This document shows positions 12,186 to 33,209 of a stretch of 64,000 nt of DNA, in pieces (the first letter of the stretch is position 1; each line of letters starts with the position of its first letter). The position numbers and the translations under genes are program-made. The stretch is from positions 1 through 64,000 of the IMG/VR virus record IMGVR_UViG_3300030419_004471; one strand, 5' to 3'. The notes beneath the pieces are model-generated. The model ran no database searches and was not told where the DNA came from. It saw only the letters and a program-made list of their open reading frames with translations.

Positions 12186-13649
12186 TTAAATTGCTTTCTT
12201 TTTCATTTCAGTTATCTCATCAAGTATTTCAGTATCTTCTAATGTATAATCATATGCCATAAAATGATTAAAATTATGTTCGACTATTGGTTTAACATTT
12301 TTCATCCATTCTAATTTCTCTTCGTCAGTTTGATTACATAGTCTTTGTATCTCTGCACCAATAACAGAAAATCTTGCAACATCTTCTTTTATTTCATCAT
12401 ATGTTTCATCTATATATGGGTGAAATGTTTTAAAACCTTTTTCTTTTAAAAATTTTAAGATGCCTGGTTTTGCAAATAAAATAAATGGATGATTGTGCAT
12501 CATTGGTTTTAAAACTTTTTCTGATATATAGTGTACTTTACTTCCTTCAAAGAAATAAGATTCAGAAACTATAGTAAACATAGAATCTTTATATGGTATA
12601 TCATTTTCCATACGCAATCCGTGTATCTCTTCTGTATTTTCTATATCAACTACCTTTTTTGGTTGCTCTATCCATAATTGTGAATATTCTCTCAAATAAT
12701 CCCTCCAGTTGAATGGGTCTTTATCAGAAACAAGTGGATAATCTCTATTTGTATAGTCATTACCTTCTATTAACCAATGCCATCCGTGCTGAAACGTAAA
12801 TCCTAAAGAATGCAAATCATATGATACTAAATTTTTATCTAATAATTTAACCAATCGTAAAAAACATAATAATAAAATTCTATGTGGTCTTATTTGCCTT
12901 AATAAACAATTAAAATCGTATTTCTTTTTTTCTACTTTATATTCTAAATTAAATGATTGATTACTTTCAGAAGTTCTAAATTTTTTATATTCATCAATTA
13001 TAGGTCTATAATAACCTGGCATATATTGTAATGGCCATACATAAGAGATAAAGTTTAATTTTTTGTTTATTATATCTGATTTAGATATCTCATTCCACCA
13101 ATCATCTATATCGTGATTTCCATATACGAAATAAATTTTATCTTCTGGTATTTCATATTTTTTCATCCACTTATAGAGATTTTCCATTTCGCTAGTATAA
13201 ACAATTCCTTCATAAAAATAATTAATCATTAAATAAAAATTGGGAGATGTTTTAACTTCTTCTACTACATCTTTGGTTATTTTATCAAATACCATATTTT
13301 CATAATCCCCAATAGAATTGATTGCTTCAGAATAAAGTGCTATTGGATAGAAAAATAATGTTTTTCTAAACTTAGGTTTTAATTTTTTTTTGTAATGATA
13401 AAAACTTACAGAAGGATGTACTCCTATAAAATTAGGGACTTGATTATATGCTTGTGGTGCGGTTTTATATTTTTTTGAATACCAATCTACATATTGCCCA
13501 GAATCCATTTTTTTTGTATCATCATAATATTCAGCAAAAGCTTCTAAGTTAATACAATTGTGAGTACTTTGATATGCTTCAAACCATTTTGATTCTGGCT
13601 CTACTGATGGGAAGTTGTAGTCATAAACAAGTTGAACATCATAGTGCAT
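12186..13649 (-). CDS. Putative glycosyltransferase, GT10-like; tandem paralogue
   Basis: FTIVSES...YISEKVLKPM..HPFILF...GFKTF; shares EKKKYDFNCL and IDETYD with neighbour. Confidence 0.55.
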   Translation of the reverse strand: MHYDVQLVYDYNFPSVEPESKWFEAYQSTHNCINLEAFAEYYDDTKKMDSGQYVDWYSKKYKTAPQAYNQVPNFIGVHPSVSFYHYKKKLKPKFRKTLFFYPIALYSEAINSIGDYENMVFDKITKDVVEEVKTSPNFYLMINYFYEGIVYTSEMENLYKWMKKYEIPEDKIYFVYGNHDIDDWWNEISKSDIINKKLNFISYVWPLQYMPGYYRPIIDEYKKFRTSESNQSFNLEYKVEKKKYDFNCLLRQIRPHRILLLCFLRLVKLLDKNLVSYDLHSLGFTFQHGWHWLIEGNDYTNRDYPLVSDKDPFNWRDYLREYSQLWIEQPKKVVDIENTEEIHGLRMENDIPYKDSMFTIVSESYFFEGSKVHYISEKVLKPMMHNHPFILFAKPGILKFLKEKGFKTFHPYIDETYDEIKEDVARFSVIGAEIQRLCNQTDEEKLEWMKNVKPIVEHNFNHFMAYDYTLEDTEILDEITEMKKKAI

Positions 13650-13658: not shown

Positions 13659-14207
13659 TTATTGATTATAATATAGTTCTGGATATTCTACTATAATATG
13701 TATCCCACCATCAGATAATGCTTTCTTATATGCTGGGAGTATTTTTTCTACTTTATCTAATTTGTGAATAGTAGAGTTTGTAACTATTTGTTCAAAAGCA
13801 TCTGTATAATCTGCTTTGTGTTGATGACCAGGGTCTAATGGTTTATCACTTCCCTTACCAACTCTTACAATTACATTTGGTTTCCACTCACCATCAGACA
13901 TTGCTTCCAATTTATCTAAATGATTTACTAACTGATTACAAGCGAGAATTAAAAAATCCCAACGTGGATAAAAAGTAACTACTTGATGACCAGCCATAGC
14001 CAATCCCATAGTCATTCCCATTTGGGTTTCTTCCATTACTGGTGTTTCTATCATTCTCTCTTTTGGTAATCCCTCAATGGTTTTACTCATTGGGTTACCA
14101 TAATAAACTATTTGTTGTCCGATGAATATTGTTTTATCATCTTCCATCGTAAGTTTCATTGCTTCAGTTAAAGCATCTAAATAAGGTGTGTATTCTGGGT
14201 TTGCCAT
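13659..14207 (-). CDS. TPP-dependent enzyme beta subunit (E1-beta/transketolase pyrimidine-binding domain only)
   Basis: ETPVMEETQMGMTMGLAMAG, NQLVNH, GHQH motifs; 182 aa. Confidence 0.85.
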   Translation of the reverse strand: MANPEYTPYLDALTEAMKLTMEDDKTIFIGQQIVYYGNPMSKTIEGLPKERMIETPVMEETQMGMTMGLAMAGHQVVTFYPRWDFLILACNQLVNHLDKLEAMSDGEWKPNVIVRVGKGSDKPLDPGHQHKADYTDAFEQIVTNSTIHKLDKVEKILPAYKKALSDGGIHIIVEYPELYYNQ

Positions 14208-15193: not shown

Positions 15194-16118
15194 AATGTTT
15201 ATATGTGTTTTTAATTCCTTGTTCAAATCCTAATTTTGGTAATAATCCATATTCCTCTTGTATTTTAGTACTCATTTTTCTCCTCATATCACCGTTGGGC
15301 TTAGAAGTGTCCCAATTTATGTTAATTTCTTTACCACTAACCTTTGAAACGGTCTCAATCATCCTTTTTATTGATATTTCTTCACCACTTCCTAAATTAG
15401 TTGTTATATGTAGTTTATCTTCGAAGCATTTTATACATCCATTAGCTACATCACCAGCATAAATGAAATCTCTTGTTGGTGTACCATCTCCCCATGCTTC
15501 TATTTCACCATCAGAGTCATAAATCTTTCTACAAGTAGCTCCAATAACAGTAGCACCCTCTCCAAAGTTATCATATTCTCCAAATATGTTAGCAGGTCTA
15601 ACAATTGTCCATTTATCATACCCATGCTGAACCTTATATGCTTCTAAATAAAGTTCTGGTATTCTTTTACTCCAAGATGGAAACCAATCATTGGGAGATG
15701 GTAGTGTATTCCAAACCGAATCTTCTACAAATTCTTCTGCGGGTTCATAAACTCCAACTGATGACATAAAAACTAACCAACAATTGTGTTTATGAGAATT
15801 ATCTATAATGTTTGTATTAACTTTTATCGATGGTTCTAAGAAATCTAATGGTTTTTCTTTAGCTCTTATAGGTGAACCCTTTATTCCAAATGCATTAATA
15901 ACTCCATTAAAGTTATAATGGTCAAATAATACATTAACCTCATCAGAATCTCTTAAATCCATATCTTGAAATATAAATCTATCACTATCAGGTAATTCTT
16001 TGGAATATTTTAAATCGACTCCTACAACAGAGTAATCATAATCCAATAATTTATGAACTAAATGAGTTCCAACTAACCCACTACATCCCGTAACTAATAT
16101 TCTTCCTTTTGTTCCCAT
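15156..16118 (-). CDS. NAD-dependent epimerase/reductase (GDP-L-fucose synthase-like SDR)
   Basis: VTGCSGLVG, RPANIFG, WGDGTPTRDFIY, WDTSKPNG; likely start MGTKG at 16118 (TAATG overlap). Confidence 0.85.
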   Translation of the reverse strand: MGTKGRILVTGCSGLVGTHLVHKLLDYDYSVVGVDLKYSKELPDSDRFIFQDMDLRDSDEVNVLFDHYNFNGVINAFGIKGSPIRAKEKPLDFLEPSIKVNTNIIDNSHKHNCWLVFMSSVGVYEPAEEFVEDSVWNTLPSPNDWFPSWSKRIPELYLEAYKVQHGYDKWTIVRPANIFGEYDNFGEGATVIGATCRKIYDSDGEIEAWGDGTPTRDFIYAGDVANGCIKCFEDKLHITTNLGSGEEISIKRMIETVSKVSGKEININWDTSKPNGDMRRKMSTKIQEEYGLLPKLGFEQGIKNTYKHYEEKRQNISNGS

Positions 16119-16759
16119 TAAAATACCACCCATTTACCAGTACCATAATGCGGGTACTTCGATTCATACTTATAATAGATTACATCTTCTGGTATTTCTC
16201 TTTGAATACCACCCCAAGTATCTAATGTTGGTGTATTTGTTGATACACCATTATCTTCTACCACAAAATAAAGTGGTAAATCGTAATTTCTAGCATATTT
16301 GTGTACTTCATAGAAGATTCCACTCTCAAAAGCCATATCTCCTACAAAAACCCATACCTTTTCATCACTTTTTTTAAGTTTAAGTGCCTTTGCAACACCT
16401 AAAGCTATTGGTAATGTACCTGTTACGATTGCAGATGCATAAAATTTACAATCCTTTTCTACAATTGTTATAGATTTACCATCTAATATTTTCTTTTTTA
16501 ACTTTTTTGGTTCTATTCCGTGCAATAATCCGTGGTAATGAGACCTCCAAGTAGAAAAAACCCAATCCGTTGGATGTATTTTTGAAAATATTTTGATTAA
16601 TTGCTCTTCGTTACCATTTGATAAATGAACTGGACCTGTTATTTCTCCGTTTGACCAATGCGTTATGATATCATCTTCGAAATCTATCAAATCTTGCTTT
16701 GACCAATTACCTTCTGTCCATCTATCTTTGTGATAATCTAAATTATTTATCTTTCCCAT
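16118..16759 (-). CDS. TPP-dependent enzyme alpha subunit (E1-alpha-like)
   Basis: HLSNGNEE, STWRSHYH, TPP-binding GDMAFESG...VEDN. Confidence 0.87.
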   Translation of the reverse strand: MGKINNLDYHKDRWTEGNWSKQDLIDFEDDIITHWSNGEITGPVHLSNGNEEQLIKIFSKIHPTDWVFSTWRSHYHGLLHGIEPKKLKKKILDGKSITIVEKDCKFYASAIVTGTLPIALGVAKALKLKKSDEKVWVFVGDMAFESGIFYEVHKYARNYDLPLYFVVEDNGVSTNTPTLDTWGGIQREIPEDVIYYKYESKYPHYGTGKWVVF

Positions 16760-17318: not shown

Positions 17319-18270
17319 AACCTAAAGGGAATCCGTTCCTATATTTTGAACTTAAATCCGATATTAAAATGTTATATGTTTTAATTAATTCTACTATTCC
17401 TCTATCTAAATTAAATTGTGGAGTCCACATTGTTTTTTCCAACTTTTCATTAGATACTATATAATCTCTTTTGTCAGGATCTTGATAATAATCAGAATAA
17501 GTTACTGCAAAATCTGGTATGTATTCTTGTATTTTCTCTACTAACTCTTGCTTTGATAAATTTGCGTTAGATAAACCTACATTAAATACTTCTCCACTAT
17601 ATTTTTCATATCTGTCCATCATAAATACAAATGTATATGCAACATCTCTAATATGAATATAGTTTCTTTTAAAATTCTTTTCAAAAATAGTAATGTACTT
17701 ATCAGTTAATGCTTTATATACAAATTCATTAACCAACAAATCCATTCTCATTCTTTGGGATGAACCAAAGACGGTGGCAAGTCTTAATGAAATGCCACCA
17801 ACTTTCAATACCTCTCGTTCTGCATCAATCTTCGTTATTCCATAATGAGATATTGGGTTTAGAGGACTATCTTCGGTACATATACCATCCTCTCCTATTC
17901 CGTATCCGCTATTTGTATTCGGATATAATATTTTTTGAGTTTTTGTTAGGTTATTACAAATAAATTTTATATGTTTGTAATTAACATCAGTTGCGAGTTT
18001 CTTATCTCTATCACAAGCTGGAAATCCAACTATAGCTGCTAATGGAACAATCACATCAGCTTCTTTTACATAAGGTAGTAGTTTTTTATGGTTTCTAACA
18101 TCACCATTTATAAATTCAAAGTTTGTTCTCCAAGAATGTCCTATTAATGATGTTTGATTGTACATCAAATTATCATATACTGTTAGTTTTGTTATTCCAC
18201 CATTTCTTAATAGAGTTTCAACTAATATTGAACCTAAATAACCTGCTCCTCCTGTAATTAATATCTTCAT
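17302..18270 (-). CDS. NAD-dependent epimerase/dehydratase (extended SDR)
   Basis: ITGGAGYLGS, LAAIVG, YGITK (YxxxK), RLATVFG. Confidence 0.9.
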   Translation of the reverse strand: MKILITGGAGYLGSILVETLLRNGGITKLTVYDNLMYNQTSLIGHSWRTNFEFINGDVRNHKKLLPYVKEADVIVPLAAIVGFPACDRDKKLATDVNYKHIKFICNNLTKTQKILYPNTNSGYGIGEDGICTEDSPLNPISHYGITKIDAEREVLKVGGISLRLATVFGSSQRMRMDLLVNEFVYKALTDKYITIFEKNFKRNYIHIRDVAYTFVFMMDRYEKYSGEVFNVGLSNANLSKQELVEKIQEYIPDFAVTYSDYYQDPDKRDYIVSNEKLEKTMWTPQFNLDRGIVELIKTYNILISDLSSKYRNGFPLGYGNQT

Positions 18271-18668
18271 TCTATAGTAACTTTTTCTTTTTCTTGAACT
18301 TTATCGTAAAAATCTTTTTCGAATTCGTTAAAATCTTTTATATCTTTACCATTTATTTTTATTTTAATATTTCTTTCTGAATTTAATATCCAATTTATTG
18401 TAGTTGGTGATAAATTTTCAATATTACATTCTTTATCATAATCAATTGGGAATATAAATGATTCATTTTCATCATATCCTACTTTATGTGCTTCTAAAAT
18501 ACTCCAACATTTTATATTATTGTTATCATCTTTATATAAATGATTTTTTGTTGGTTCTTCTTTAGATGCTATTGTATTTTTTTTAAACTCATTTAATAAT
18601 TTGTTTTTATCATATCCATTAAGACAATAACCATTTGGTTCTACTATTTCAAATAAAAAATCTATCAT
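18267..18668 (-). CDS. Hypothetical protein
   Basis: 133-aa ORF, ATGA-coupled on both sides. Confidence 0.65.
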   Translation of the reverse strand: MIDFLFEIVEPNGYCLNGYDKNKLLNEFKKNTIASKEEPTKNHLYKDDNNNIKCWSILEAHKVGYDENESFIFPIDYDKECNIENLSPTTINWILNSERNIKIKINGKDIKDFNEFEKDFYDKVQEKEKVTIE

Positions 18669-19402
18669 AACAATTTAACTCTTTCATTTACAACCAAATT
18701 ATATTCTAAGTGCATTGAGTTTCCTGATAAATCCCACACTTTATATTTTGTATGTTCTCTTGGGTTCATAACAAACACTGGATTTTCTAACATTTTCATA
18801 GGAACTCTTGTAGCATTTTTATTTTTCTCTAACATATCTAACACTTCCTGTTCACTGTGTATTGTTGAAAACAATCCACACTCTTTTAAATCAAAACTAC
18901 AAAATCCTATATGTTCTGGGTCAGGAATAATTCCTTCATAATAATTACAAAATCCAAAATGAAATGGCGCTGATGTATAATCGTGCAATTCTCCTTTATA
19001 TATTTGTTTTCTTCTTATAGTATCTCCAGTATATTCATTTCTAACATAAAGTTCAAACTTTTTTTGTTCTGCGTGATGATGTACTATAAAAGTAGCCTCA
19101 TCCCATATAGCTTGTCCAAGATGTTCAGTTGTCATTGTCCAAAAAGTTGGATGGTCTATACCTTCTTCTTGACTCCACCAGTCCCAACTAAAACATCCCC
19201 CATTAAGTTTAGCAAATAAACCATAATGCATTCCTGGTCTAACGAATATACCTTTATTGTATGTGTCCGATGGGTCTCTTAATAATTTAAATCTTATATA
19301 AAATGTAAAATCACCCTGCATAGATGGTCCGCTCATTACATCTGATAGTTCGTATAAACGATTTTGTTCTATGTTCCAAGGCTTTCTATAATTTATAATC
19401 AT
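18665..19402 (-). CDS. LamG/concanavalin A-like beta-sandwich protein (putative)
   Basis: Beta-rich; ends VWDLSGNSMH, similar to DISGNDND and DLSGNKVD at the ends of the LamG-like inserts in the GT7 proteins. Confidence 0.5.
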   Translation of the reverse strand: MIINYRKPWNIEQNRLYELSDVMSGPSMQGDFTFYIRFKLLRDPSDTYNKGIFVRPGMHYGLFAKLNGGCFSWDWWSQEEGIDHPTFWTMTTEHLGQAIWDEATFIVHHHAEQKKFELYVRNEYTGDTIRRKQIYKGELHDYTSAPFHFGFCNYYEGIIPDPEHIGFCSFDLKECGLFSTIHSEQEVLDMLEKNKNATRVPMKMLENPVFVMNPREHTKYKVWDLSGNSMHLEYNLVVNERVKLL

Positions 19403-19406
19403 ATAA

Positions 19407-20969
19407 TTATTTTTGTATATATAATTGTTTATCGTGGTTAAACTCTATGTTACCCCACTTATGATAAAGCTCATCAAATTCAGGAAATACTTTTAAAAAG
19501 TCTGTTCCTCTTCTTTTATCGTGTGCTTTCATAAAGTTATGAAAGTTTAATCTGGTTTTATTTACCCAAGATTCATCTGCTATTTCACCATATGGTTTTT
19601 TGAAATCTCCCTCCATCCAATCGTGAAGTCTTTTAATTTTTTGTATTTCAATATCAGAATATCCAACATAATCATATCCGAAAGATGGAATTCCATAATA
19701 AAACATAAGTTTAGCTTGGTCAAATACTTTTTTGTTCCAAGATTTTGGTAATATTTGTACGGCTTGATGGGGTGGATGTCTTAAATAAGATGTATCTAAG
19801 AAAACAGCTGATTCCCAAAATCTATCACTACTACCATATTCGTGCTTTAGCTGATATACTCCATCAAGTAATTTATGATAACTTGGAACTGATAATGCGT
19901 TGTAAGTACTCATAATAGTAATATTAACTCTTGGACATTTAGTTAATATTGTATTCATATTATTCCAAAATCTATTAAATACTAATCCGTGTCTTGCATA
20001 TTCAGCTTGTTGACCCCATCCATCAACTGAAGTAAATATAATAAATTCTTTTACTCTTCTTTCATCACATATTCTATTTATCTTATCACAAAATTTATCA
20101 ATTAACTCATCGGGTACTCCCAAATTTGAATTTATTGCTAATTGTAATTTTCTATTTGGTTTTGGTTGCTCAATTATATAATCTAAAACTTTCCAAGTAT
20201 CTTTAGATAATAAAGGTTCTCCTCCAGTAATTCTAAAAGTATGTAAATCCCAATATAGGTCAGGCCACCATTTCCAAAATGCTTCTACATAAGGATTATG
20301 TTCTGTTTGTTTTTGAGGCCACTTATCTTCAATCTGATGTTGTTTTATACCATTAAAATCATCAGTAGTTGGATACCCTCCATACTTTTCTATCTCTTGT
20401 TGCCAAGTTGTTGAATATGCAGGTCCACAATATGAACATTTGAAGTTACAAGTATGTGAGAATGATACCTCAACATAACGTGGATTAAAATCTCCTCTCC
20501 AATCAGATTTTCGTATCTCATCATAATGGGGTTTAGACCAACTTTCGTTTGATTTAAATGTCCTATCTGAAAAGTGGTTTGAATTATCCTCTACATTCCA
20601 ACAATAACCACATTCTTTTGGTCTTTTGTTTTCCAACATCTCTTTTCTTCTAAGCTTCTTAAATCTTGTATTGTGAAGTGCAGATGGATTTCTTTTTATT
20701 TCAGCTTCAGATACTTTATGTGTTCCAGGGTGGTGACAGGAATGATTATGTCCTGTCTGCATTTGTATTGTAACTTGTGTCCATTTCGCTAAACAAAATC
20801 CACAACCAACATCATCCAGCTTAGTTTTCATTTCACGGAAGTCTTGATTTTCATATATAAAATCATTTCCTTTAGGAGCAATATCTTTATGTTTCTCTTG
20901 CTCCTTCTTTACCGCATCCCTTTGTTCTTGTGCCGCCTTATCTAAATTCTCTTTTAATGCTTCTGACAT
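19407..20969 (-). CDS. Radical SAM protein with N-terminal twitch/SPASM-like Cys cluster
   Basis: CNFKCSYC (CxxxCxxC), TGGEP; N-terminal CLAKW...SCHH...CGYCW. Confidence 0.9.
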   Translation of the reverse strand: MSEALKENLDKAAQEQRDAVKKEQEKHKDIAPKGNDFIYENQDFREMKTKLDDVGCGFCLAKWTQVTIQMQTGHNHSCHHPGTHKVSEAEIKRNPSALHNTRFKKLRRKEMLENKRPKECGYCWNVEDNSNHFSDRTFKSNESWSKPHYDEIRKSDWRGDFNPRYVEVSFSHTCNFKCSYCGPAYSTTWQQEIEKYGGYPTTDDFNGIKQHQIEDKWPQKQTEHNPYVEAFWKWWPDLYWDLHTFRITGGEPLLSKDTWKVLDYIIEQPKPNRKLQLAINSNLGVPDELIDKFCDKINRICDERRVKEFIIFTSVDGWGQQAEYARHGLVFNRFWNNMNTILTKCPRVNITIMSTYNALSVPSYHKLLDGVYQLKHEYGSSDRFWESAVFLDTSYLRHPPHQAVQILPKSWNKKVFDQAKLMFYYGIPSFGYDYVGYSDIEIQKIKRLHDWMEGDFKKPYGEIADESWVNKTRLNFHNFMKAHDKRRGTDFLKVFPEFDELYHKWGNIEFNHDKQLYIQK

Positions 20970-20993
20970 TTGTTGTTCTTATATTAATATATA

Positions 20994-22436
20994 TTATAAC
21001 TTAACATTTATTAATTTTGCTTTTGGATTTATTTCTTCAACTCCAACTAACTCATATTTTAGTTGTTTAATACCATCCGATTTATAATCCCAATTACCTT
21101 GCTGCATTTCTAAAACGTATCTTCTTTCATTTGCAGCTGTAGTTTCTCCTTTAGCCCATCTATCTTGTCCTTTATCATCGGTAATTAATCCTTCATCTTT
21201 ATGAGGTAAACAAGTCATTCTACCTTCTCTTCTATGTGGTATTGGTGCTTGTGCTATCGTTATCTCATCTTCTCCTGTTATTATAGTATCTACGTTACCA
21301 TCGTTATCATTACCACTAATATCTTTAGCCTCACCCTCATTAAATTCATAATGTAATTTTAATCCGTCTGATGGGATTTCATTCATTAAATTTTTGATTT
21401 CTTCTGTTTCTAATTTTCTGTTCCATAACATAACCTTTGCTATATCACCTTTAAAGAATTTATTTACATCTCTCTCACCAACTGAAGTTGTGTATCCTAT
21501 AGTATATGGTACTGAACCATATCTTTTTAAACTACCTTCATATTTTTGTGGTGAATGAGTTCCATGCCCATGCCTTGCATCTGATTCTCTTCCATTTAAA
21601 TAAAAATGAATAAAATTATTTTCAGTATCAACTGTTAATGTAACCCAACTCCAATAATTTTCGTATCTCTTCATCCATTGATATAAAGCTTCTTTTTTAT
21701 TATTCCATAAAAGTGCAGTATATGCTCTACTATTGTTATAAGATAATCCCCAATCATATCCTGCTCTTCTTATAATTGGATATTCAGTAAATCTTCTATC
21801 ATAATCACCAACTAACCAAATTGGTACTTTGTGTTCTTGTTGATTTGCTCTAACTAAAACTGAAACAGTATGTGATTTAGTAGTAAGGTGAGCTGTATCT
21901 CTATTTGTTGGTATTGTTACTCCAGAATTTATTCCATTAAAAGAAAAGAACTCTTGATGACCTAATTTTGTTTCTTTTACATCCGCCATTCCTTCTAAAT
22001 AACATCTCCAGAATAAATCATCATCTTCCATTCCCCAATCCCAATAATCATTAGAATATCCATTTGTTTTTTCTACTTGTTCTTTAGAAAATATTACTGC
22101 TCCTCCAAAATATTCTTGATATTTTAATTGATAATCCATTTGAGATATGTTCGTTGCAATATGAATTGGATATTTTTCAGGAAAAGAATAATCACATCCT
22201 TCTTCTGGTATCATATCTATATCATGCCAAACAACATAATCACATCCTTCTTTAAATGCCCATTCAGCAGCTACATTCTTCATAGCTCCCCTATTAAAAA
22301 GTTTATCATCTACTTGATGACCAAAATACATACAATAATCTATTCCTTTAGATTCTAAATATGCTCCAACTTTTGGTACAAACTCTTTTAAGTGAGCTTC
22401 TCTATTTCTATATGGTACACAAACTCCTAATTTCAT
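20994..22436 (-). CDS. GT7 (beta-1,4-galactosyltransferase-like) glycosyltransferase with inserted LamG-like domain
   Basis: VPYRNR, FNRG, HDIDM (DxD), YFGG, NGYSNDYWDWGMEDDD; central ConA-like insert. Confidence 0.88.
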   Translation of the reverse strand: MKLGVCVPYRNREAHLKEFVPKVGAYLESKGIDYCMYFGHQVDDKLFNRGAMKNVAAEWAFKEGCDYVVWHDIDMIPEEGCDYSFPEKYPIHIATNISQMDYQLKYQEYFGGAVIFSKEQVEKTNGYSNDYWDWGMEDDDLFWRCYLEGMADVKETKLGHQEFFSFNGINSGVTIPTNRDTAHLTTKSHTVSVLVRANQQEHKVPIWLVGDYDRRFTEYPIIRRAGYDWGLSYNNSRAYTALLWNNKKEALYQWMKRYENYWSWVTLTVDTENNFIHFYLNGRESDARHGHGTHSPQKYEGSLKRYGSVPYTIGYTTSVGERDVNKFFKGDIAKVMLWNRKLETEEIKNLMNEIPSDGLKLHYEFNEGEAKDISGNDNDGNVDTIITGEDEITIAQAPIPHRREGRMTCLPHKDEGLITDDKGQDRWAKGETTAANERRYVLEMQQGNWDYKSDGIKQLKYELVGVEEINPKAKLINVKL

Positions 22437-22439
22437 AAT

Positions 22440-22910
22440 TTAATCTAATTCCATTTTTCGTTCAAAGTATTTTGCATCTTCAATACACTTTGGATTTTGT
22501 TTTATAGTTTGCATTGCTATCATATCTTTCATCTTGGTTGTTGACCAACCATGTGCTCTAGTAGTATATACAATCTTTGGAGGTAAGTCATCACCTGTAA
22601 AGGGTTTACCTATATAATCTTCACCCAAAATTCTTATATCCGGCTTAAAGAACTCAATTAATTTATAAAGTTCTTTTTCGGTTTGATATACATATACTTC
22701 ATCTATATATTTTATAGCCATCAACGTTCTATATCTTTCGTGTAATGGTATAACTGGTTTGTATTTTGATTTCCTATGTTCATTCGGGTCTCTCTGTAAG
22801 AATACTATAAACTTATCACAATGTTCTTTTGCTGCTTCAAAGGTATAAATGTAACCTGGATGAATCAAATCAAAATTACCCGCCGTAAATCCTACTATTT
22901 CTTTTTTCAT
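22440..22910 (-). CDS. Cytidylyltransferase (TagD/glycerol-3-phosphate cytidylyltransferase-like)
   Basis: GNFDLIHPGY, GEDY, RAHGWSTT motifs. Confidence 0.85.
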   Translation of the reverse strand: MKKEIVGFTAGNFDLIHPGYIYTFEAAKEHCDKFIVFLQRDPNEHRKSKYKPVIPLHERYRTLMAIKYIDEVYVYQTEKELYKLIEFFKPDIRILGEDYIGKPFTGDDLPPKIVYTTRAHGWSTTKMKDMIAMQTIKQNPKCIEDAKYFERKMELD

Positions 22911-23065
22911 TTTATTCCACCATTTTCAATTGTGTCTATCATAGTTATTATCTGGTCGTGCCATTTACTATAAGTGTCTCTATCGCCTTCCCAAGTTGCC
23001 TGTTCGCATCTTGTTTTATAAAAATCTCTAATTATTACTAATAATTTAACTATTACGCTCTTCAT
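22907..23065 (-). CDS. Small hypothetical protein (52 aa)
   Basis: Not in ORF track; MKSVIVKLLVIIRDFYKTRCEQATWEGDRDTYSKWHDQIITMIDTIENGGIK; ATGA overlaps at both ends. Confidence 0.7.
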   Translation of the reverse strand: MKSVIVKLLVIIRDFYKTRCEQATWEGDRDTYSKWHDQIITMIDTIENGGIK

Positions 23066-24507
23066 AATTCTGCTACAATATAGTTAACATCTACTGAACC
23101 ATTTTCTACTCCAAATTTTAATTTATTATCACTAACAGTTTTATATTTTAATGTTTCTATACCATCTCTTCTCCAATTAGTTTCACCTTTTAAAACTTCA
23201 TTGTAAAATCTTAATTGGTTTTTTCTTGTTTCGGTATAAATCCATTTGTTTTCATAAAATCCATTATCTTCGTGAAATAATAGTTTAAATTTAGATTCTC
23301 TTCTCCAAGGAACTACTTCTTCTTGATAAGCTTCTGTATGTGGGCTTTGTACTCTATTACAATAATGTACTTTTCCGTCAACTTTGTTACCGCTCAAATC
23401 ATATAATTGATGGTTGGTTGATGCTTTTGCATCGTAAGCTACTTCCAAACAATGTGGAGTTGTATAACCATCATATCCTTCACTAACACCAAGATATAAG
23501 TTATTATAAACTGCTTCAACTTGTCCTGGTTCTAATGAATGATTCCAAACTGCGAATTGATGAATCAATCCCTTAAATCCTCTACGATTATTTGCAGATT
23601 TTGGAAGTGTCTTACCTAAATACATAAATTTCTCATTGTGGTAAGGTAGTAATCTTCCTTTGAATGTTGCTTCATCGATTAATTTACCATCCTGATATAA
23701 TTTTATGAATTTATTATATTGGTCTACAACAACCATTAAAGTTGTTCTGCGTTCAGTTTGTATTGTTGATTTTAAACTTATACATTGTTTACTTGTTGTA
23801 AAAGTTTCGAATTTGTATCTTCTAAAAGAATTAAATGTAAATCCAGTATCGTAACCTGGTACTGCTACAATAGAATATTCATCTATTTCTAAATCTTCTC
23901 TACAATCTATTTTATAAGGTTCGCATTCTAATAGCATAGTGTAATTATCTAAACCAAATTTCATTGGTATTTTAACTTCACTATCCCAACCATTGAATTC
24001 TAAACCTACGGTATTCCAAGTTTTAATTGGTGTTTGTTTTTTATTTAAATCAAAGAAGTTTTCTTTACATCTAAATAATAAGTCATCATCCTCATATCCC
24101 CAGCCCCAATATTCGTTAGAGTAACCATTTATTTTATAATAGTCCATTATAGGAAATAAGGTTACTCCACCAAAATATGAATCGAATATGACTCTCCTCT
24201 CACCAACATCTGATTCGAAGTTTGTAGCAAGGTGTGTAGGTCTATTGACATATGAATAATCTACATCAATAGGTAGCATATCTACATCATGCAGGGCTAT
24301 GTAGGTACATCCTAACTTCTTTGCCTTCTCAACACCAATGTTGAGTAGTTTACCTCTATTAAATGGTTTATCATCAGCTTGTTCAGCAACAATCAATTCA
24401 TATTTGATTTTTTGCTTCTTTAAATGAGATGATATAGATGTTATAAATTGGTTAAGATGTGCCCTACGATTTCTGTAGGGAACAATTATACCAATCTTAT
24501 TTATCAT
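23062..24507 (-). CDS. GT7 glycosyltransferase with inserted LamG-like domain (paralogue of 20994..22436)
   Basis: IVPYRNR, FNRGKLLN, HDVDM, YFGGV, NGYSNEYWGWGYEDDD. Confidence 0.88.
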   Translation of the reverse strand: MINKIGIIVPYRNRRAHLNQFITSISSHLKKQKIKYELIVAEQADDKPFNRGKLLNIGVEKAKKLGCTYIALHDVDMLPIDVDYSYVNRPTHLATNFESDVGERRVIFDSYFGGVTLFPIMDYYKINGYSNEYWGWGYEDDDLLFRCKENFFDLNKKQTPIKTWNTVGLEFNGWDSEVKIPMKFGLDNYTMLLECEPYKIDCREDLEIDEYSIVAVPGYDTGFTFNSFRRYKFETFTTSKQCISLKSTIQTERRTTLMVVVDQYNKFIKLYQDGKLIDEATFKGRLLPYHNEKFMYLGKTLPKSANNRRGFKGLIHQFAVWNHSLEPGQVEAVYNNLYLGVSEGYDGYTTPHCLEVAYDAKASTNHQLYDLSGNKVDGKVHYCNRVQSPHTEAYQEEVVPWRRESKFKLLFHEDNGFYENKWIYTETRKNQLRFYNEVLKGETNWRRDGIETLKYKTVSDNKLKFGVENGSVDVNYIVAEL

Positions 24508-26416: not shown

Positions 26417-27403
26417 TTAAAAAATATTGATGATTTTTTTCGCCCATCTTTTTTTGTTATTATATTTTTTCATCCAATGTTGTAAGTTTCCGAAATTATC
26501 TAAAATTTCATCAAAAGAATCTGAGGATATTGCTTTTACCATTTCATCGAATTCTTTTTTATTGGATGCTCTATATTTGTAATTTACATCTCCCCAATCA
26601 GAATGTATAATAGGTACTTTTCCATAATCAACGGCTTGGAATATTGAGTACCCAAATGGTTCATTGGTATGACAAGAATGTGATATAGTCCAATTCTTTT
26701 TCATAAACGAATCTAATATTTTTATATCCCATTGATAAAATCTAATCTTATCAAAATTATAATTACTATTTTCTACTATATTTCTCCAATCATATTGCGA
26801 ACTAAGTACACATCCTTGATGATTATCCAAATAGTGTACATTTTTACGAGATTCTATTCGAGAAGTAAATCCAATTTTATTATTTTGTAAATTTTTTAGA
26901 AATATATTGTGTTTAAATTCATAAAAGTTAGGAATTGTTATGGTATTGGAAGGATAATCTTTAAATAATTGTGAATCTGTTAATCCAACCCATACTCTTT
27001 TCTTACAATATCTCATTAAATCATTTACTGCTCCAGTTTCTACCTTTGTTTGAAATTGTCTTTTGGAATCTCCATACTTTAACATATCAGGAAGATATGC
27101 ATGAACGAAAATAGTATCCCATTTATTTCTATGTTTCCATAAATGGTCTCTATAATGATAATTGGAATGTAAGAAGTGTATTTTATCGCACCTATTAAGT
27201 AAACTTTCTGTAGTTGATGGACTTTCATCGTGAAAGTGAAAATTTGTTAATTCACTTTTAAATCCAACTGGTCGTTTTCCATCAACTAAAATATAATAAG
27301 AATCTTTTAATTTCGGTAGAACTAAATCAATAAAATGATTTACCCATATATCCGCACCACCTTGTATAATGTTTCCGAAACCGGTTGTTACTAATAAATT
27401 CAT
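26417..27403 (-). CDS. GT-B fold (GT4-like) glycosyltransferase
   Basis: N-terminal GGA, IPN, SRIESRKN, EPFGYSIFQA (variant of ExFG...E). Confidence 0.75.
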   Translation of the reverse strand: MNLLVTTGFGNIIQGGADIWVNHFIDLVLPKLKDSYYILVDGKRPVGFKSELTNFHFHDESPSTTESLLNRCDKIHFLHSNYHYRDHLWKHRNKWDTIFVHAYLPDMLKYGDSKRQFQTKVETGAVNDLMRYCKKRVWVGLTDSQLFKDYPSNTITIPNFYEFKHNIFLKNLQNNKIGFTSRIESRKNVHYLDNHQGCVLSSQYDWRNIVENSNYNFDKIRFYQWDIKILDSFMKKNWTISHSCHTNEPFGYSIFQAVDYGKVPIIHSDWGDVNYKYRASNKKEFDEMVKAISSDSFDEILDNFGNLQHWMKKYNNKKRWAKKIINIF

Positions 27404-30400
27404 TCAGAACCGCTTATTTGATTTTCTAATTCTGTTACCTTTGTAGATAACTCTTGTATTGCTTTAATCATTGGTGCAATCATTTCATTATATCTTAATC
27501 CTAAGTGAGTATCTACCACTGTAAAGTTATTTATATTCCAACCCTGTGCCTCTATTTCTCTCTTATCACCAATAGCACTACCACTTTGATATATTACATT
27601 TTTAATGTATCCAGCAAAGTTATCTGTATGTACAGAGGATGATGCCAAAGATTCGGATACTTGTTGAGCGGTTAAACCATAATGAGTTCTACTACCCGTT
27701 ATAAAATTATATTTTATTGGGTTAAGGTTATTAATAAATTCTAAACCTAAATCAGAACCACTAATATTTTCTTTTTGATTTTTATCAGATGTTTGAATTG
27801 TTCCATTTGTTGCATAAACATCATCCCATCTTCTACCACTAGTACCTAAATCATCAGAATCATCAGTTGCTGGGAAAAAATAACTGGAGTTTGTTCCATA
27901 TCCTTGATTTGTAATAAAGGGACTTCCTACCTCTCTTATATTATCAAAAGAAGCTGATTGGAAATCTCCAAAGTTTGCCGTTAAATCAGCAGTATTACCG
28001 TCCACACCATCAATTTCAACTTTACCTCCTTTAACTTTTAAAAGGGTTGGTTGAGTTCCAAATCCTGTATCCAATCTTGAAACTTGAACATATGTATTTG
28101 AATCAGTTAAAAGTTGTAATCCCTTTGAAGTTAATTCAACAACATTTGATGGAATTACAATAGTTGCATCTGCCATTACAGAAGTACCACTATAAGCCGA
28201 ATATGCAAATTGGTCTGCTGTATAATTAAACGTTTGGTTTCCAGATGAATCTGTTGTTCTATTATAACCAGAATACACTCCTACTCTAGTTTCATATCTA
28301 AACTTATAAGTTCCTGCTTTAAGATATATTGATTTAGATAATTCAGCTGCATTACCACTATAGTTTGTAGTAGAAGCATTGGTAGTAGTTCCTGAATTGT
28401 AATCCCATGCTAAAGTACCACCTCCTATATCCACAGCCACATAATATGGTGAACTTGTGTAATCTCCTTTATGGTATACTGTTTTAAGAAGTACTCTAGT
28501 TTGAGTTCCTGCATTATCTCCTGTTATACCATCTGCAACAAAATATGTGTATAAATAAAACATAATTGGTTGTGAGTTATTTGACCAAGGATGTTGTTGT
28601 CCTACAAATGATGGATTATAGTTTGGATATGCAGTAGTACCAGCACTTATAGCAGCTGGTTCAGATAATGTTACTGTATGCGCTTGGCGTGCTTGTAATT
28701 CATAAGTACCATCTTGGTCTATTGTGTATGTAGATGTTGTATTTGTTTCGTTAATATATGGACCAAATTGACCACTAGCATTACTTCCAGAAGATGTTGG
28801 TAATGAACCCGATGCTGATAAACTAGCCATTGTATAATCTATACCTGAAATTGATAGATTTCCTCCAGTTGTACTTGACCACTCGGAGGCTGGTTTTAAT
28901 CTTAATTTTGTATCAAGAGTAGTAGAACCAGATTTAAATAACATTTCAGGAGTTGCAGGGTCTAATATTAAACTTGATGAAGCTGCTAATTGTGCACTTT
29001 GTAATGCACCACCCGAACCAGATTCTATTACATGCCACAATCCTACAATACCATCATCAACTGATATTGAACCAGAGATGGTTGCATCTTGAGCTGTCAT
29101 ATTACCATTCTCATCTACACTAAATTTTGGATTGTTTGCATCTGGAATATTAAGTGTACTACCAGCTATAGTTCCACCTTCTATAGATGAACCACTTACC
29201 CTACCGTGTACTAATAAAGAAGATGAACCTGCATTCCATCTTAAAAATCCATCAGTACCATTTAATTCAAAATCACCACTAGATGACATATATGTTTGCC
29301 ACGCCGATGCACTAAAGAATCCTAAATTACTTGCTCCTAAAAATAACCCATCACCATCTGAAGATGATGGTGTTATTGGTTTGTTAAGTTTACCCGAAGA
29401 ACCACTAATTGTAGGTACAGATGATGCTGTAAAATTATTAAGTGGTGTTAAATCAACATCTTCAGAACCATTGGTTAAAACAATAGCTCCTCCAATTTGT
29501 AATGTTTGTCCATCCCATCTAAGATAGTTAGAAGAATTACTACCAGTTAAGAAAAATTGGCCTGCGTTATCCATATAACTATTCCATTTAGATGCACTAT
29601 AAAATCCTAAATTAGTAGAACCTAAATATAATCCATTACTTGAGGGTGCTGGTGCTTTTGTAATAAGACCTGTTGATGGGTCTACTGAACCACTAGCCGA
29701 TGCCGATAAAGCCGCATTAGCTGCAAATGCCGAACCACTCAATACTGAATTATTTCCAGCGAGTGTAGCAGCTGCTGAACCACTTAATACCGCATTATCA
29801 TTTCCAGTTAAAGCTACTGAAGCTGATACTGAACCTGTAAGAGCTGCATTCAATACCCCTGTTTGTAATGAAGCTGTCTCAGCTTGTAATGATGCGGTCT
29901 CAGCCATTAATGATGAGGTAGCTAATTGTAATGATGCGGTCTCAGCTTGTAATGAAGCTGTCTCAGCCATTAATGATGAGGTAGCTAATCGTAAAGATGC
30001 AGTTTCTGCATTTAGTCGGGCTGTTGTACCTTCAAGCGATGCGGTAGATACCGATAATTGTGTTGTTTGGGTTTCCAACGATGCCGTAGCTGCTTCTAAT
30101 GATGCCGTAGCTACTGATAATTGTGTTGTTTGAGTGTCAACCGATGAACTAAATGTAGCTGGATTACCAAGACCTGTAATAGTTGAAATTGTCGATGTAC
30201 CAATTGAAGTCGTTGTAATATTTACAACTCCACCTGCATCTACACTTAATACATCACCAGCATCAGCTACACCCGATGCTGATACCAATACTGCTGTTTC
30301 TAAAATTCTTGATTGATTACCTTTTGTAAATGGTACACTTTGTTCTACTTTGATTGGAATGAAGTTATTATTAATATCATAAAACTCTACTCTAAAATCA

Positions 30401-31986
30401 AATTGTTCTGTTGGGTTTTTTCTTGGTATATCTACAATAGCTGTATATTCATCAGGTGAATACGAAGATTCTTCTGCATTCTTTAATGATAATCTATTAA
30501 AGTAAAATTGTCCTCCACCATTTGTTGTATTTGCTTCCGCTCTAATTTGTGTTTTACCAGTAATATCTGAAAAGAAGTTCTTTGTAGTTTTCTGAATATT
30601 ACCCAATCCATTAGAATTTCTATCATATGAACCACTAACTAAATCTAATGATTGTGTTGTAACAGTACAATTAGTGGTATTGTTGGATGAAGTTACAATT
30701 AAGAATCTTAAACTATCTCCAGCTACAGAAGCTCCTGAACCAGAGTATCTAGCGGAATATGAAAATTGATATTCTGAACCACTTACTACTTCAAACTCTC
30801 CAATAGTACCAGCTGATTCAACACTATGTGAACCACTAACCAATAAAGAGTTTATTAAATGTTCATTATGTATTTGTACACCTGATGATGTTGTATAATA
30901 AACATCTCCTACATCTGATACTATATTTTCTTTTCTTAGTTTACCATAATTAATTACTGTTCTATTGTCTACGGTAAAATCTCTTAGTAATTCTGTTGAA
31001 TCTAATTTGTTTTCTTGTACAACTTGGAAATCTCCTAAATCGTTTCTTGATTTTCTAAATATTTTTATTCTAGCTACATCACCAGTAAATGTGGCTAAGT
31101 TCTCTAATCGTATTTCTGCATATGATGCGACAACATTTGAACCAGTATTTACAGTTGCATCTTCAACCGATTCAAATTCCATTGAATAAGATGTTGCATT
31201 AAATTCATTTACTATATTGTTTACTAAATAAGGCCTTTTAACTAACATTTCATCTTCATTTAGTACTTCTAATACGGAAGATGAATATCCTATACTATCA
31301 ACAATCAACGTTGTGTTTTCATCCATTGATTGTGTAAACTTATTTCCTTCTTGTAGTTTAATTAAATATGAAGATGGTGCAGTCCAATTACTAAAATCAG
31401 AACCAGTATCAGGAGTATTTGCAATACCAATAACTGAACCTGATTTATTTAAAGTCATATTAGATTTAATCAATAAAGATTTTTCTATTTCTGTAACAGA
31501 AAATGTTGGTCTTTTAAAAAATCTAACTTGTGTGGAATTTGGTATCTTTGGATTTACTTTGAAGTTTTGTGTCCAACGAATGTTAGGCCTACCTCTGTAT
31601 TCATTAGGTACTTTCTTAACCTGTCCTTTATCATCTAAACAAGTTTCTAATTCACCTACAATTGAAATACTACCAACACCAATTGGAGTATCATCATATA
31701 TATGTACAGATAGTACTGTGGAATTACCATCTCTAAAAGTTTTTCCATATTTTTTTCCTGGCTCTACATAAATTGTATTTCCTTGAACATCTAATATTTC
31801 AAATAATACCTTAGAACCTTTTTTTAAAAAAGTACTTCCTTCAAATAAAAAGGCATTTTTTCCTCCAGTAAAAGTTTTTGGAAATTCTGTTATATTGAAA
31901 TAAGGTGAGTCTGGATTTTTATCTTCTATAAAAACATCCAGATTTTTCAGACCTAATTTGGGTGAATATTTTTTTACTATTGCCAT
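27400..31986 (-). CDS. Tail fibre protein with coiled-coil repeats and C-terminal S74 intramolecular chaperone
   Basis: LGTSGRRWDDVYA...IQTSDKNQKENI...YGLTAQQV...LRYNEMIAPMIKAIQEL; Ser/Thr/Gly-rich. Confidence 0.9.
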   Translation of the reverse strand: MAIVKKYSPKLGLKNLDVFIEDKNPDSPYFNITEFPKTFTGGKNAFLFEGSTFLKKGSKVLFEILDVQGNTIYVEPGKKYGKTFRDGNSTVLSVHIYDDTPIGVGSISIVGELETCLDDKGQVKKVPNEYRGRPNIRWTQNFKVNPKIPNSTQVRFFKRPTFSVTEIEKSLLIKSNMTLNKSGSVIGIANTPDTGSDFSNWTAPSSYLIKLQEGNKFTQSMDENTTLIVDSIGYSSSVLEVLNEDEMLVKRPYLVNNIVNEFNATSYSMEFESVEDATVNTGSNVVASYAEIRLENLATFTGDVARIKIFRKSRNDLGDFQVVQENKLDSTELLRDFTVDNRTVINYGKLRKENIVSDVGDVYYTTSSGVQIHNEHLINSLLVSGSHSVESAGTIGEFEVVSGSEYQFSYSARYSGSGASVAGDSLRFLIVTSSNNTTNCTVTTQSLDLVSGSYDRNSNGLGNIQKTTKNFFSDITGKTQIRAEANTTNGGGQFYFNRLSLKNAEESSYSPDEYTAIVDIPRKNPTEQFDFRVEFYDINNNFIPIKVEQSVPFTKGNQSRILETAVLVSASGVADAGDVLSVDAGGVVNITTTSIGTSTISTITGLGNPATFSSSVDTQTTQLSVATASLEAATASLETQTTQLSVSTASLEGTTARLNAETASLRLATSSLMAETASLQAETASLQLATSSLMAETASLQAETASLQTGVLNAALTGSVSASVALTGNDNAVLSGSAAATLAGNNSVLSGSAFAANAALSASASGSVDPSTGLITKAPAPSSNGLYLGSTNLGFYSASKWNSYMDNAGQFFLTGSNSSNYLRWDGQTLQIGGAIVLTNGSEDVDLTPLNNFTASSVPTISGSSGKLNKPITPSSSDGDGLFLGASNLGFFSASAWQTYMSSSGDFELNGTDGFLRWNAGSSSLLVHGRVSGSSIEGGTIAGSTLNIPDANNPKFSVDENGNMTAQDATISGSISVDDGIVGLWHVIESGSGGALQSAQLAASSSLILDPATPEMLFKSGSTTLDTKLRLKPASEWSSTTGGNLSISGIDYTMASLSASGSLPTSSGSNASGQFGPYINETNTTSTYTIDQDGTYELQARQAHTVTLSEPAAISAGTTAYPNYNPSFVGQQHPWSNNSQPIMFYLYTYFVADGITGDNAGTQTRVLLKTVYHKGDYTSSPYYVAVDIGGGTLAWDYNSGTTTNASTTNYSGNAAELSKSIYLKAGTYKFRYETRVGVYSGYNRTTDSSGNQTFNYTADQFAYSAYSGTSVMADATIVIPSNVVELTSKGLQLLTDSNTYVQVSRLDTGFGTQPTLLKVKGGKVEIDGVDGNTADLTANFGDFQSASFDNIREVGSPFITNQGYGTNSSYFFPATDDSDDLGTSGRRWDDVYATNGTIQTSDKNQKENISGSDLGLEFINNLNPIKYNFITGSRTHYGLTAQQVSESLASSSVHTDNFAGYIKNVIYQSGSAIGDKREIEAQGWNINNFTVVDTHLGLRYNEMIAPMIKAIQELSTKVTELENQISGSE
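29863..30133. repeat. Intragenic 21-nt (heptad) tandem repeats including a near-perfect 63-nt duplication
   Basis: Units such as ttgtaatga(a/t)gc(t/g)gtctcagc encode (AETASLQ/LATSSLM)n. Confidence 0.85.
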
Positions 31987-32835: not shown

Positions 32836-33209
32836 TTTATAATTCTATTTATCCAGTTATATCTTTTTCTCATTTTTAAATACATTAAATCTTTATCATT
32901 ATCATAAGCTTCTCTTTCAAATGAAATATTGTAATATGCTTTTGCTCCATAAAAAGGTAATTTTAATATCCACTCCAAAACATATAAAATATAAAATGGA
33001 ATTACTCCTAATTCTAATGCTTGTTGAAAATGAATTGTTTCGTGATTTATAGTTTCAATACCTCTTTGTTTCCAAAAATCATTACCATCTCTATATTTTT
33101 CTCTTAAAATAATAAATGGAAAAAGAGATATTCCGCCTATCCTCATAAACAAGCCTATAGTATCTAAAAACTTATCGTTGTATTTTATAAATGGTTTCCA
33201 ATTTTTCAT
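32832..33209 (-). CDS. Small HExxH metallopeptidase-like membrane-associated protein
   Basis: INHETIH, hydrophobic segment, ISFEREAY. Confidence 0.6.
   Translation of the reverse strand: MKNWKPFIKYNDKFLDTIGLFMRIGGISLFPFIILREKYRDGNDFWKQRGIETINHETIHFQQALELGVIPFYILYVLEWILKLPFYGAKAYYNISFEREAYDNDKDLMYLKMRKRYNWINRIIK

Follow-up and report, generated by a model that had tools for sequence, protein, structure and literature searches.

Beta4GalT-like (GT7) glycosyltransferases with a nested LamG domain in a conserved gene cassette of uncultured T4-like phages

The 64-kb window analyzed here, comprising positions 1 to 64,000 of the 213,601-bp IMG/VR virus record IMGVR_UViG_3300030419_004471 and forming the start of that record, encodes two proteins, GT7-A and GT7-B, in which a catalytic domain of glycosyltransferase family 7 (GT7), of the β-1,4-galactosyltransferase (β4GalT) type, is interrupted by a β-sandwich domain resembling laminin G (LamG) and pentraxins. 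This GT7-LamG arrangement is a new, essentially phage-only domain architecture of a known enzyme family. The two genes share a conserved cassette with genes for a radical S-adenosylmethionine (SAM) enzyme and for a free-standing LamG-like protein (Table 1). A preliminary description of the sequence had outlined the open reading frames (ORFs) of GT7-A, GT7-B and the free LamG-like protein, and all three were recovered as outlined, on the minus strand and with lengths of 481, 480 and 245 aa. The overall best explanation, in which we place moderate confidence, is that the GT7-LamG transferases build a glycan, with each nested LamG domain holding a paralogue-specific acceptor.

GT7-A and GT7-B are GT7 proteins by Pfam match, by completeness of the fold, and by possession of the DxD and WGxEDDD motifs. 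Both matched Glyco_transf_7N, Glyco_transf_7C and Laminin_G_3 above the respective gathering cut-offs of 27, 23 and 27.6 bits, with scores of 77.7, 54.8 and 38.1 bits for GT7-A and 55.7, 69.2 and 46 bits for GT7-B, and in both the Glyco_transf_7C match ends at model position 60–62 of 78, just past WGxEDDD. The two are 30% identical along their entire length including the insert (E = 2e-60), and by this similarity are paralogues. Within a 37-sequence family, residues D72, D74, Y109-FGG, W132, W134-G, E137-DDD, L410 and H412 are invariant, and the DxD and WGxEDDD motifs of the GT7-B family align to DVD and WGWGGEDDD of β4GalT1; judged by these residues, the enzymes look catalytically competent. 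The profile of the same family matched β4GalT1 with E = 1e-42, placing residues 2–150 onto bovine residues ~180–332, and gave a second, weak match at residues 429–468 (DG..L.Y near the C-terminus). A search of the PDB by phmmer with the C-terminal 86 residues of GT7-B did not recover β4GalT.

The fold of the complete chain was evaluated using an AlphaFold2 model of GT7-B (mean predicted local distance difference test score (pLDDT) 88.5; predicted TM-score (pTM) 0.77). Structural alignment with VIA-align superposed the model on bovine β4GalT1 (1tvy_A) with Z = 27.7 and a root-mean-square deviation (rmsd) of 1.9 Å over 213 residues, spanning model residues 1..480 and chain residues 180..398, and on β4GalT7 with Z = 26.7. 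The likeness to these two animal enzymes of CAZy family GT7 (rmsd 1.9–2.0 Å, 30–32% identity, 206–213 aligned residues) extends to conservation of DxD, YFGG, WGxEDDD and a histidine in the C-terminal part. This histidine, H412 in GT7-B, may be the equivalent of His347 of bovine β4GalT1, the second metal ligand at the start of the long flexible loop, to judge from the range of the structural alignment. Independent ESM Atlas models from viral clusters in which these three Pfam families also co-occur matched the GT7-B model with a TM-score of 0.90 over 460 residues. Because the superpositions cover the full chain as well as the insert, each protein comprises a complete GT-A catalytic domain interrupted by a complete LamG/pentraxin-like β-sandwich. 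In contrast to β4GalT1, the phage enzymes have neither signal anchor nor stem, their chain beginning at bovine residue ~180, and hold the 240-residue LamG domain between bovine residues ~332 and 340.

Bacterial relatives provide a direct view of the uninterrupted enzyme. Scanning genomes, one for each prokaryotic species, revealed ~100 loci that match only residues 2–150 of the GT7 proteins; the corresponding ORFs are mostly 216–300 aa long and 45–50% identical to the phage enzymes over those residues. A profile of GT7-B residues 397–480 matched the C-terminal 60–70 residues of these ORFs, in which the C-terminal part starts no more than 10 residues past the N-terminal match, at the same junction that is filled by ~245 residues in the phage GT7s. 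By eye, the motifs G.Y..L.H and DGL..L.Y correspond between phage and bacterial enzymes, and LxH (L410 and H412, invariant in the phage family) is kept in the insert-less homologues. A MAFFT alignment of phage and bacterial enzymes left the C-terminal parts unaligned across the insert; the separate C-terminal profile succeeded. Since in insert-less bacterial enzymes of ~218 residues no more than 10 residues separate these two halves, the LamG sequence represents a true nested-domain insertion. GT7 enzymes are textbook animal Golgi enzymes, and the initial remark that the family is best known from eukaryotes stands with a qualification, in that ~100 bacterial species genomes and giant viruses (Megaviridae, Mimivirus) carry GT7-like proteins that match the catalytic part and lack the insert. 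The bacterial proteins (~218–300 aa) share both the catalytic N-terminal part and a homologous C-terminal part with the phage enzymes, and differ from them in having no LamG domain.

β4GalT1 has the Mn ligands M344 and H347 and a long flexible loop (residues 345–365), which closes upon donor binding and forms the acceptor site and the α-lactalbumin site. By construct arithmetic, the N-terminal part of the phage enzymes ends at bovine residue ~332, and because M344, H347 and the loop come next, the insert is placed at the hinge of the loop that forms the acceptor site, with the insertion point at most 12 residues ahead of the metal-binding hinge.

Structural comparison of the insert, GT7-B residues ~159–396, yielded matches to the LG domain of PAPP-A, to BACOVA_03559 (4dqa) and to pentraxins, with Z = 18–21.5 over ~190–200 residues at 13–19% identity, and the pentraxin and LG alignments run sequentially through the entire insert. 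The nearest solved structure to the insert profile by sequence is the CBM40 domain of the sialidase NanC (E = 3e-6), and C-reactive protein was matched with E = 5e-4. The inserts are LamG_3 jelly-roll β-sandwich domains. PAPP-A LG, 4dqa, the pentraxins and the pneumococcal sialidase lectin domain all share this fold, and in no case is the domain nested within a glycosyltransferase. Much of the preliminary description is borne out at this point: the GT7 motifs are intact up to WGxEDDD and followed by a ConA-like insert that ends in D(I/L)SGN, as seen in the sequence and in the Pfam matches; a GT7 C-terminal part follows, according to the superposition of GT7-B on 1tvy_A and the 397–480 profile that recognizes insert-less ORFs; and the insert is indeed a β-sandwich (Z ~21 over ~195 residues).

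The D(I/L)SGN motif lies C-terminally in the LamG modules, beyond the Laminin_G_3 match (GT7-B 349–396, GT7-A 339–398, free protein 200–240), and in GT7-A the strands past DLSGN lead back into the catalytic domain. A similar DxSGNGN motif usually precedes LamG_3 domains. On these sequence grounds the module is possibly a circular permutation, although the structural alignments to pentraxins are sequential.

The insert diverges faster than the domain that surrounds it. Among B-type orthologues, identity is 63% in the insert versus 86% and 75% in the two catalytic halves, and between A and B paralogues it is 25% versus 45% and 29%. Together with the position at the hinge of the acceptor loop, this divergence fits a paralogue-specific role in acceptor binding. 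The initially proposed function of the insert as a lectin-type acceptor-recognition module is plausible; the sialidase lectin-domain and pentraxin neighbors are compatible with a lectin by sequence, without constituting proof.

The free LamG-like protein has no match in Pfam or PHROG, and BLASTP against the GT7 inserts was not significant. Comparison of its family profile with GT7-B residues 181–388 by hhalign gave a probability of 99.2% (E = 2e-19), with 194 columns aligned, among them those of the D.SGN strand at the C-terminus; the pairwise search being insignificant, the relationship is visible only through profiles and folds. Laminin_G_3 (PF13385) was matched directly by 7 of 41 relatives of the free protein. 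Its model is mediocre (mean pLDDT 57, core 70–93), and all matches to the core are of ConA-like, LamG, pentraxin or neurotoxin Hc-N fold (Z = 10–12 over ~150 residues). The free protein is LamG-like, as first described, and a homologue of the GT7 insert. An exhaustive profile search identified 67 free-LamG clusters at 50% identity, nearly all of them stand-alone proteins of 230–260 aa.

Several observations connect the free LamG protein to the radical SAM enzyme. The latter matched NF033640 with E = 5e-102 (341.9 bits, against a cut-off of 170), and its CNFKCSYC motif (CX3CX2C; C174, C178 and C181) is invariant. Profile search detected free LamG genes in 66 of 80 related IMG/VR viral loci (analyzed with 10-kb flanks, as for all cassette gene orders and member counts below); a count of 13/80 obtained by BLASTP proved wrong and was discarded. 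In 72 of 74 cases the free LamG gene starts within 150 nt after a radical SAM gene, and the stop codon of the one often overlaps the start codon of the other; L118, L124 and related loci contain tandem duplicates of the two genes as one unit. In alignments of pairs from L088–L167, mean column identity is 64% for radical SAM orthologues and 26% for the neighboring free LamGs; such a rate asymmetry is as expected of a specificity-determining adaptor. A model of the radical SAM:free LamG complex attained an ipSAE of 0.67 (median of three runs; best of three controls, 0.00), with at least 83% of contacts agreeing between runs and partner pLDDT values of at least 85. Of 80 solved complexes, 58 attain this ipSAE mark, as do 2 of 110 mismatched pairs, counts that apply only roughly here, where our own alignments were used. 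The predicted interface consists of LamG residues 14–19 and 218–237 (the DLSGN strand) and radical SAM residues 416–446, and holds the most conserved positions of the two families (LamG K221, D224 and SGN; radical SAM G436, E441, K444 and R447). The model supports binding of the two proteins to each other as a prediction, and the gene coupling together with the complex model makes the free LamG more likely the partner of the radical SAM enzyme than of the GT7s. In the GT7s the DxSGN motif sits where the insert rejoins the catalytic domain and, by analogy, the DxSGN strand may be a general docking edge of this LamG type.

Two further features were observed at this end of the cassette. In L111 (8779–18720) and L112 (2908–9597), tandem arrays of five to seven diverged radical SAM paralogues with N-terminal twitch domains lie beside GT7-LamG genes, and free LamG was not detected with these arrays. 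In the window, a 133-aa ORF (18267–18668, minus strand) shares 4 nt with the end of the free LamG gene, stop codon included; neither a family match nor, in the 80 loci, a BLASTP homologue was found for it, and an ORF of the same size follows free LamG in the two nearest contigs (L003, 133 aa; L005 and L006, 131 aa).

GT7-LamG relatives are encoded at no fewer than 578 loci in IMG/VR (at least 578), and a word search with the GT7-B region returned 967 relatives, to which a GT7-A search added 62. Among the 120 matches listed, all are metagenomic, either without name or automatically named ‘beta-1,4-galactosyltransferase 1’, and nearly all of the full-length ones have the same three Pfam families. 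ESM Atlas clusters of this architecture are 100% viral. Full-length matches in ‘bacterial’ metagenome-assembled genomes (MAGs) amount to eight loci, for which phage contamination is the likeliest origin: a 248-kb ‘Flavobacteriaceae’ contig (G001:C1, with L010) carries GT7-LamG genes and a T4-like large terminase (TerL) 32% identical to that of the window phage, and a Flavobacteriales MAG (G005, with L014 and L015) has four different terminase genes on other contigs. Since the TerL of the former contig is only 32% identical, at least two T4-like lineages that are distant from each other carry the cassette. A tblastn search of 50,697 deposited phage genomes with both GT7s found no match, so there is no cultured representative, and BFVD, which holds models of UniProt viral proteins, contains no protein with both GT7 and LamG parts. 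No paper on the GT7-LamG architecture was found in a literature search; this architecture, its phage specificity, its two- to threefold tandem use and the radical SAM–LamG pairing appear undescribed so far.

The source of the window is a complete genome of an uncultured aquatic T4-like phage (CheckV completeness 100%), with a G+C content of ~30%, nearly all window genes on the minus strand, and T4-type genes for portal, large terminase, baseplate wedge protein and an SbcC-like nuclease. Its terminase is closest (56–57% identity) to those of Microcystis phage Mel-JY01 and Flavobacterium ‘immuto’ myophages. The GT7-LamG genes are contained in a block of sugar-metabolism genes at ~7–34 kb. Across the 80 loci, the cassette is colinear in the order GT-B-like, methyltransferase, GT2-like, GT7-LamG genes, radical SAM, free LamG and nucleotide-sugar genes. 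GT7-LamG genes are present in tandem throughout (80/80), as two copies in 52 loci and three in 28, and the 77 loci with radical SAM genes have one to seven of these per cassette. The distal nucleotide-sugar genes encode short-chain dehydrogenases/reductases (SDRs), an RmlC-like epimerase and a split thiamine pyrophosphate (TPP)-dependent E1-like enzyme. No transmembrane (TM)-like segment was found in any cassette enzyme examined. The first cassette protein (328 aa) is possibly a GT-B glycosyltransferase, a lead that comes from its atlas feature neighbors (GT4/GT1 at 0.97) and a weak Glycos_transf_1 match (E = 0.011). The 156-aa enzyme encoded between the GT7 genes matched phrog_7878 (E = 6e-31), had NCBIfam matches under the equivalog cut-offs, and is present in 16 of the 80 loci.

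Table 1. Features of the GT7-LamG cassette in the window (loci, related IMG/VR viral loci; C-part, C-terminal catalytic part; AF2, AlphaFold2).
Feature	Position	Strand	Basis or occurrence
GT7-A, 481-aa β4GalT-like glycosyltransferase with nested LamG	23062..24507	minus	Pfam
GT7-A N-terminal catalytic part, residues ~1–152; HDVDM (DxD), YFGG, WGWGYEDDD	24052..24507	minus	
GT7-A LamG-like insert, residues ~155–398; DLSGN at 370–374	23314..24045	minus	Laminin_G_3 at 225–330; aligned to GT7-B insert
GT7-A C-terminal catalytic part, residues ~399–481	23065..23313	minus	aligned to GT7-B C-part; family-invariant L..H, DG..LKY
GT7-B, 480-aa β4GalT-like glycosyltransferase with nested LamG	20994..22436	minus	Pfam, AF2, superposition
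GT7-B N-terminal catalytic part, residues 1–152; HDIDM, YFGG, WDWGMEDDD	21981..22436	minus	profile versus β4GalT1
GT7-B LamG/pentraxin-like insert, residues ~155–396; DISGN at 372–376	21249..21974	minus	Laminin_G_3 at 169–348
GT7-B C-terminal catalytic part, residues 397–480; invariant L410, H412, DG..LKY	20997..21248	minus	
Free LamG-like protein, 245 aa; DLSGN at 224–228	18665..19402	minus	profile homology to GT7 inserts; 66/80 loci
Radical SAM enzyme, 520 aa, N-terminal twitch domain	19407..20969	minus	NF033640; 77/80 loci
Cytidylyl/adenylyltransferase-like enzyme (RfaE domain II/TagD-like), 156 aa, between GT7 genes	22440..22910	minus	PF01467, 53.4 bits
GT2-like protein, 313 aa	24726..25667	minus	PF13704, E 5.8e-5, below cut-off; 76/80 loci
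Methyltransf_24 methyltransferase, 259 aa	25577..26356	minus	PF13578, 37.2 bits; 74/80 loci
Possible GT-B glycosyltransferase, 328 aa, first cassette gene	26417..27403	minus	kept in 62/80 loci

The proposed mechanism would proceed as follows. GT7-A and GT7-B would be soluble, cytoplasmic, Mn-dependent inverting GT-A glycosyltransferases of the β4GalT (GT7) type, presumably derived from a minimal GT7-like enzyme of ~218 residues, into which a LamG/pentraxin-like sandwich of ~240 residues was inserted in the short connector from the helix after WGxEDDD to the strand bearing the metal-binding histidine; the insertion would be older than the A/B duplication. The two paralogues (three elsewhere) probably extend a glycan stepwise with β-linked hexoses taken from UDP-sugars, and each nested LamG would, in all likelihood, hold a paralogue-specific acceptor, glycan or protein, beside the active site. 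The free LamG would be the same module acting in trans, predicted to dock onto the radical SAM enzyme via residues 14–19 and the DLSGN strand. Because the cassette encodes no membrane protein, the acceptor would be reached in the cytoplasm, and our preferred guess, weakly held, is a cytoplasmic protein such as a virion protein. What the analysis shows is the architecture, the homologies, the synteny and the distribution; binding between radical SAM and LamG has the support of a model, and we infer the type of donor, recognition of the acceptor by the insert and which molecule the acceptor is.

Several points weigh against this mechanism. Faster divergence is to be expected of any non-catalytic domain, irrespective of its function, and a mere scaffold would yield similar statistics. 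The insert has a mixed set of best structural matches (PAPP-A LG, pentraxins, the CBM40 domain of sialidase and a putative carbohydrate-binding protein), and domains of LamG/pentraxin fold are as frequently protein binders as glycan binders. The complex model reports the confidence of the model itself and not binding. Finally, the tail-fiber gene adjoining the cassette is not a conserved neighbor, with SbcC or small ORFs occurring upstream elsewhere, and it was accordingly dropped as evidence for a virion acceptor.

Possible, though on balance doubtful, is a reading of the nested LamG as a scaffold or docking module that stabilizes the flexible loop, mediates oligomerization or assembles the cassette enzymes, with specificity residing in the GT7 core. 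Such a role would accord with the predicted docking of the free homologue onto radical SAM via the DxSGN strand, with the location of DxSGN in the GT7s at the return of the insert to the catalytic domain, with the fixed inter-domain packing suggested by the pTM of 0.77 and the TM-score of 0.90 between independent models, and with the matches to PAPP-A LG and pentraxins, which are protein-binding modules. However, ~240 residues would be costly for a brace, and the insert is kept, with paralogue-specific sequence, in two or three diverged paralogues per genome. Docking by an edge would also be compatible with a ligand on another face, such that scaffold and acceptor-binding roles are not mutually exclusive. 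A more speculative extension, which we regard as rather unlikely, is that LamG serves as a shared, exchangeable targeting adaptor, in cis in the GT7s and in trans to the radical SAM enzyme, directing the enzymes to one macromolecular acceptor.

Improbable, in our estimation, is remodeling of a host envelope glycan (lipopolysaccharide, capsule or S-layer) by the cassette, acting on lipid-linked intermediates at the cytoplasmic membrane face with the LamGs recognizing the host glycan. The nucleotide-sugar genes are of the O-antigen/capsule type (RmlB/RmlC-like, Fcl-like SDRs, nucleotide-sugar dehydrogenase) and insert-less GT7-like genes are common in bacteria, which both speak for this route. 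Yet no initiating phosphoglycosyltransferase, flippase, polymerase or TM-like segment was found among the cassette enzymes, so the route would rely wholly on host machinery, and the GT7-LamG family occurs essentially only on viral contigs, the MAG matches that were checked appearing phage-derived.

The preliminary description had suggested that the free LamG protein (18665–19402) might be a partner subunit of the GT7s, and a related possibility is a regulatory or specifier subunit analogous to α-lactalbumin for β4GalT1. The protein does share the cassette (66/80 loci) and homology with the inserts, but it directly follows radical SAM in 72/74 cases and is duplicated with it as a unit, the complex model (in which the pair modeled was radical SAM and free LamG) with its controls favors radical SAM, and the GT7s already hold a LamG module in cis; the suggestion is unsupported, and the specifier role is very unlikely. 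Least credible of all is glycosylation of phage DNA (hypermodified bases), an activity common among phage glycosyltransferases and compatible with a T4-like phage whose enzymes are all cytoplasmic, given that the only thymidylate-synthase homologue in the genome is a canonical ThyA (343.8 bits versus an equivalog cut-off of 327) 45 kb away, that the cassette methyltransferase is a Methyltransf_24 and not a C5-DNA methyltransferase, and that the GT-A enzymes known to act on DNA resemble JGT and are of a lineage other than GT7 (10.1101/2023.12.21.572611). The genome had no Tet/JBP match, in a search whose control also gave no signal.

The polypeptide N-acetylgalactosaminyltransferases (ppGalNAc-transferases; GT27) resemble the phage enzymes in concept only, as GT-A transferases with a lectin-like module that steers acceptor choice; their module is a C-terminal ricin-type β-trefoil on a linker, in contrast to the nested ConA-like sandwich of the phage GT7s. 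PF02709 is in the same GT-A clan as GT27, and the phage GT7s do not belong to the GT27 lectin-guided transferases, so that the comparison offered at the outset would hold as a functional analogy and not by membership. In lactose synthase, the acceptor specificity of a GT7 enzyme is set by α-lactalbumin near the flexible loop; α-lactalbumin is a separate subunit of lysozyme fold, whereas the phage module is LamG-fold and covalently nested, and the analogy with free LamG as the GT7 specifier is not supported. Phage-encoded sets of multiple glycosyltransferases are also found in mycobacteriophage virion glycosylation and in ‘moraphages’. The latter are aquatic phages of 200–307 kb whose predicted hosts are Bacteroidota and whose core genes include four orthogroups of putative glycosyltransferases, and the paper that describes them reports no GT7-LamG architecture (PMC12619734). 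The conserved cassette analyzed here likewise has four GT-like genes, its TerL is nearest to those of Flavobacterium and Microcystis phages, and the four moraphage orthogroups may be these cassette genes.

Additional genes of the window are recorded here, all on the minus strand. The split TPP-dependent E1-like enzyme consists of an α-like E1_dh gene and a β-like Transket_pyr gene (16118–16759 and 13659–14207), which sit among RmlB/RmlC/Fcl-like nucleotide-sugar genes and recur in many of the related loci, suggesting that an unusual deoxysugar, possibly branched or extended by two carbons, is made. Two paralogous proteins of ~486 aa (10724–12184 and 12186–13649) recur in 42/80 and 23/80 of the related loci and have no match in Pfam, NCBIfam or the PDB, where phmmer searches with the 328-aa, GT2-like and 486-aa proteins were all empty; their C-terminal ETS...YISEKV...P motif presumably recalls those of fucosyltransferase-type enzymes. 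A 1202-aa protein (6960–10568) combines an N-terminal cytidylyltransferase-like domain with an HD domain, has no assignment over most of its length and was not found in the 80 loci, where it may lie past the 10-kb flank. A nucleotide-sugar dehydrogenase ORF (32014–32835) covers only model positions ~67–297 of 413 and is preceded, with a 4-nt overlap, by a 125-aa ORF (32832–33209) with two hydrophobic windows and no Pfam match; together these may be a split or degenerate UDP-glucose dehydrogenase (UGDH). Directly upstream of the cassette lies the gene for a 1528-aa fiber-like protein (27400–31986) with a C-terminal Peptidase_S74 intramolecular chaperone, and a 1975-aa protein (45613–51540) has a weak Laminin_G_3 match at 47197–47601 (22.6 bits, below cut-off).

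These results describe a large, essentially phage-only branch of GT7 that has an entire LamG domain built into the acceptor-loop hinge, and which would be a natural example of specificity engineering via domain insertion in a GT-A transferase. The predicted radical SAM–LamG heterodimer is directly testable with recombinant proteins. If the reading of LamG as a shared adaptor is true, it would amount to phage-encoded, lectin-guided protein glycosylation in widespread aquatic jumbo phages, with a virion protein as the most attractive acceptor. The cassette, with at least four GT-like genes, radical SAM and LamG genes and unusual nucleotide-sugar genes, marks a conserved, uncharacterized glycan pathway in abundant uncultured aquatic phages, the product of which, whether a virion glycan or a change in the host surface, could affect host range and phage–host recognition.

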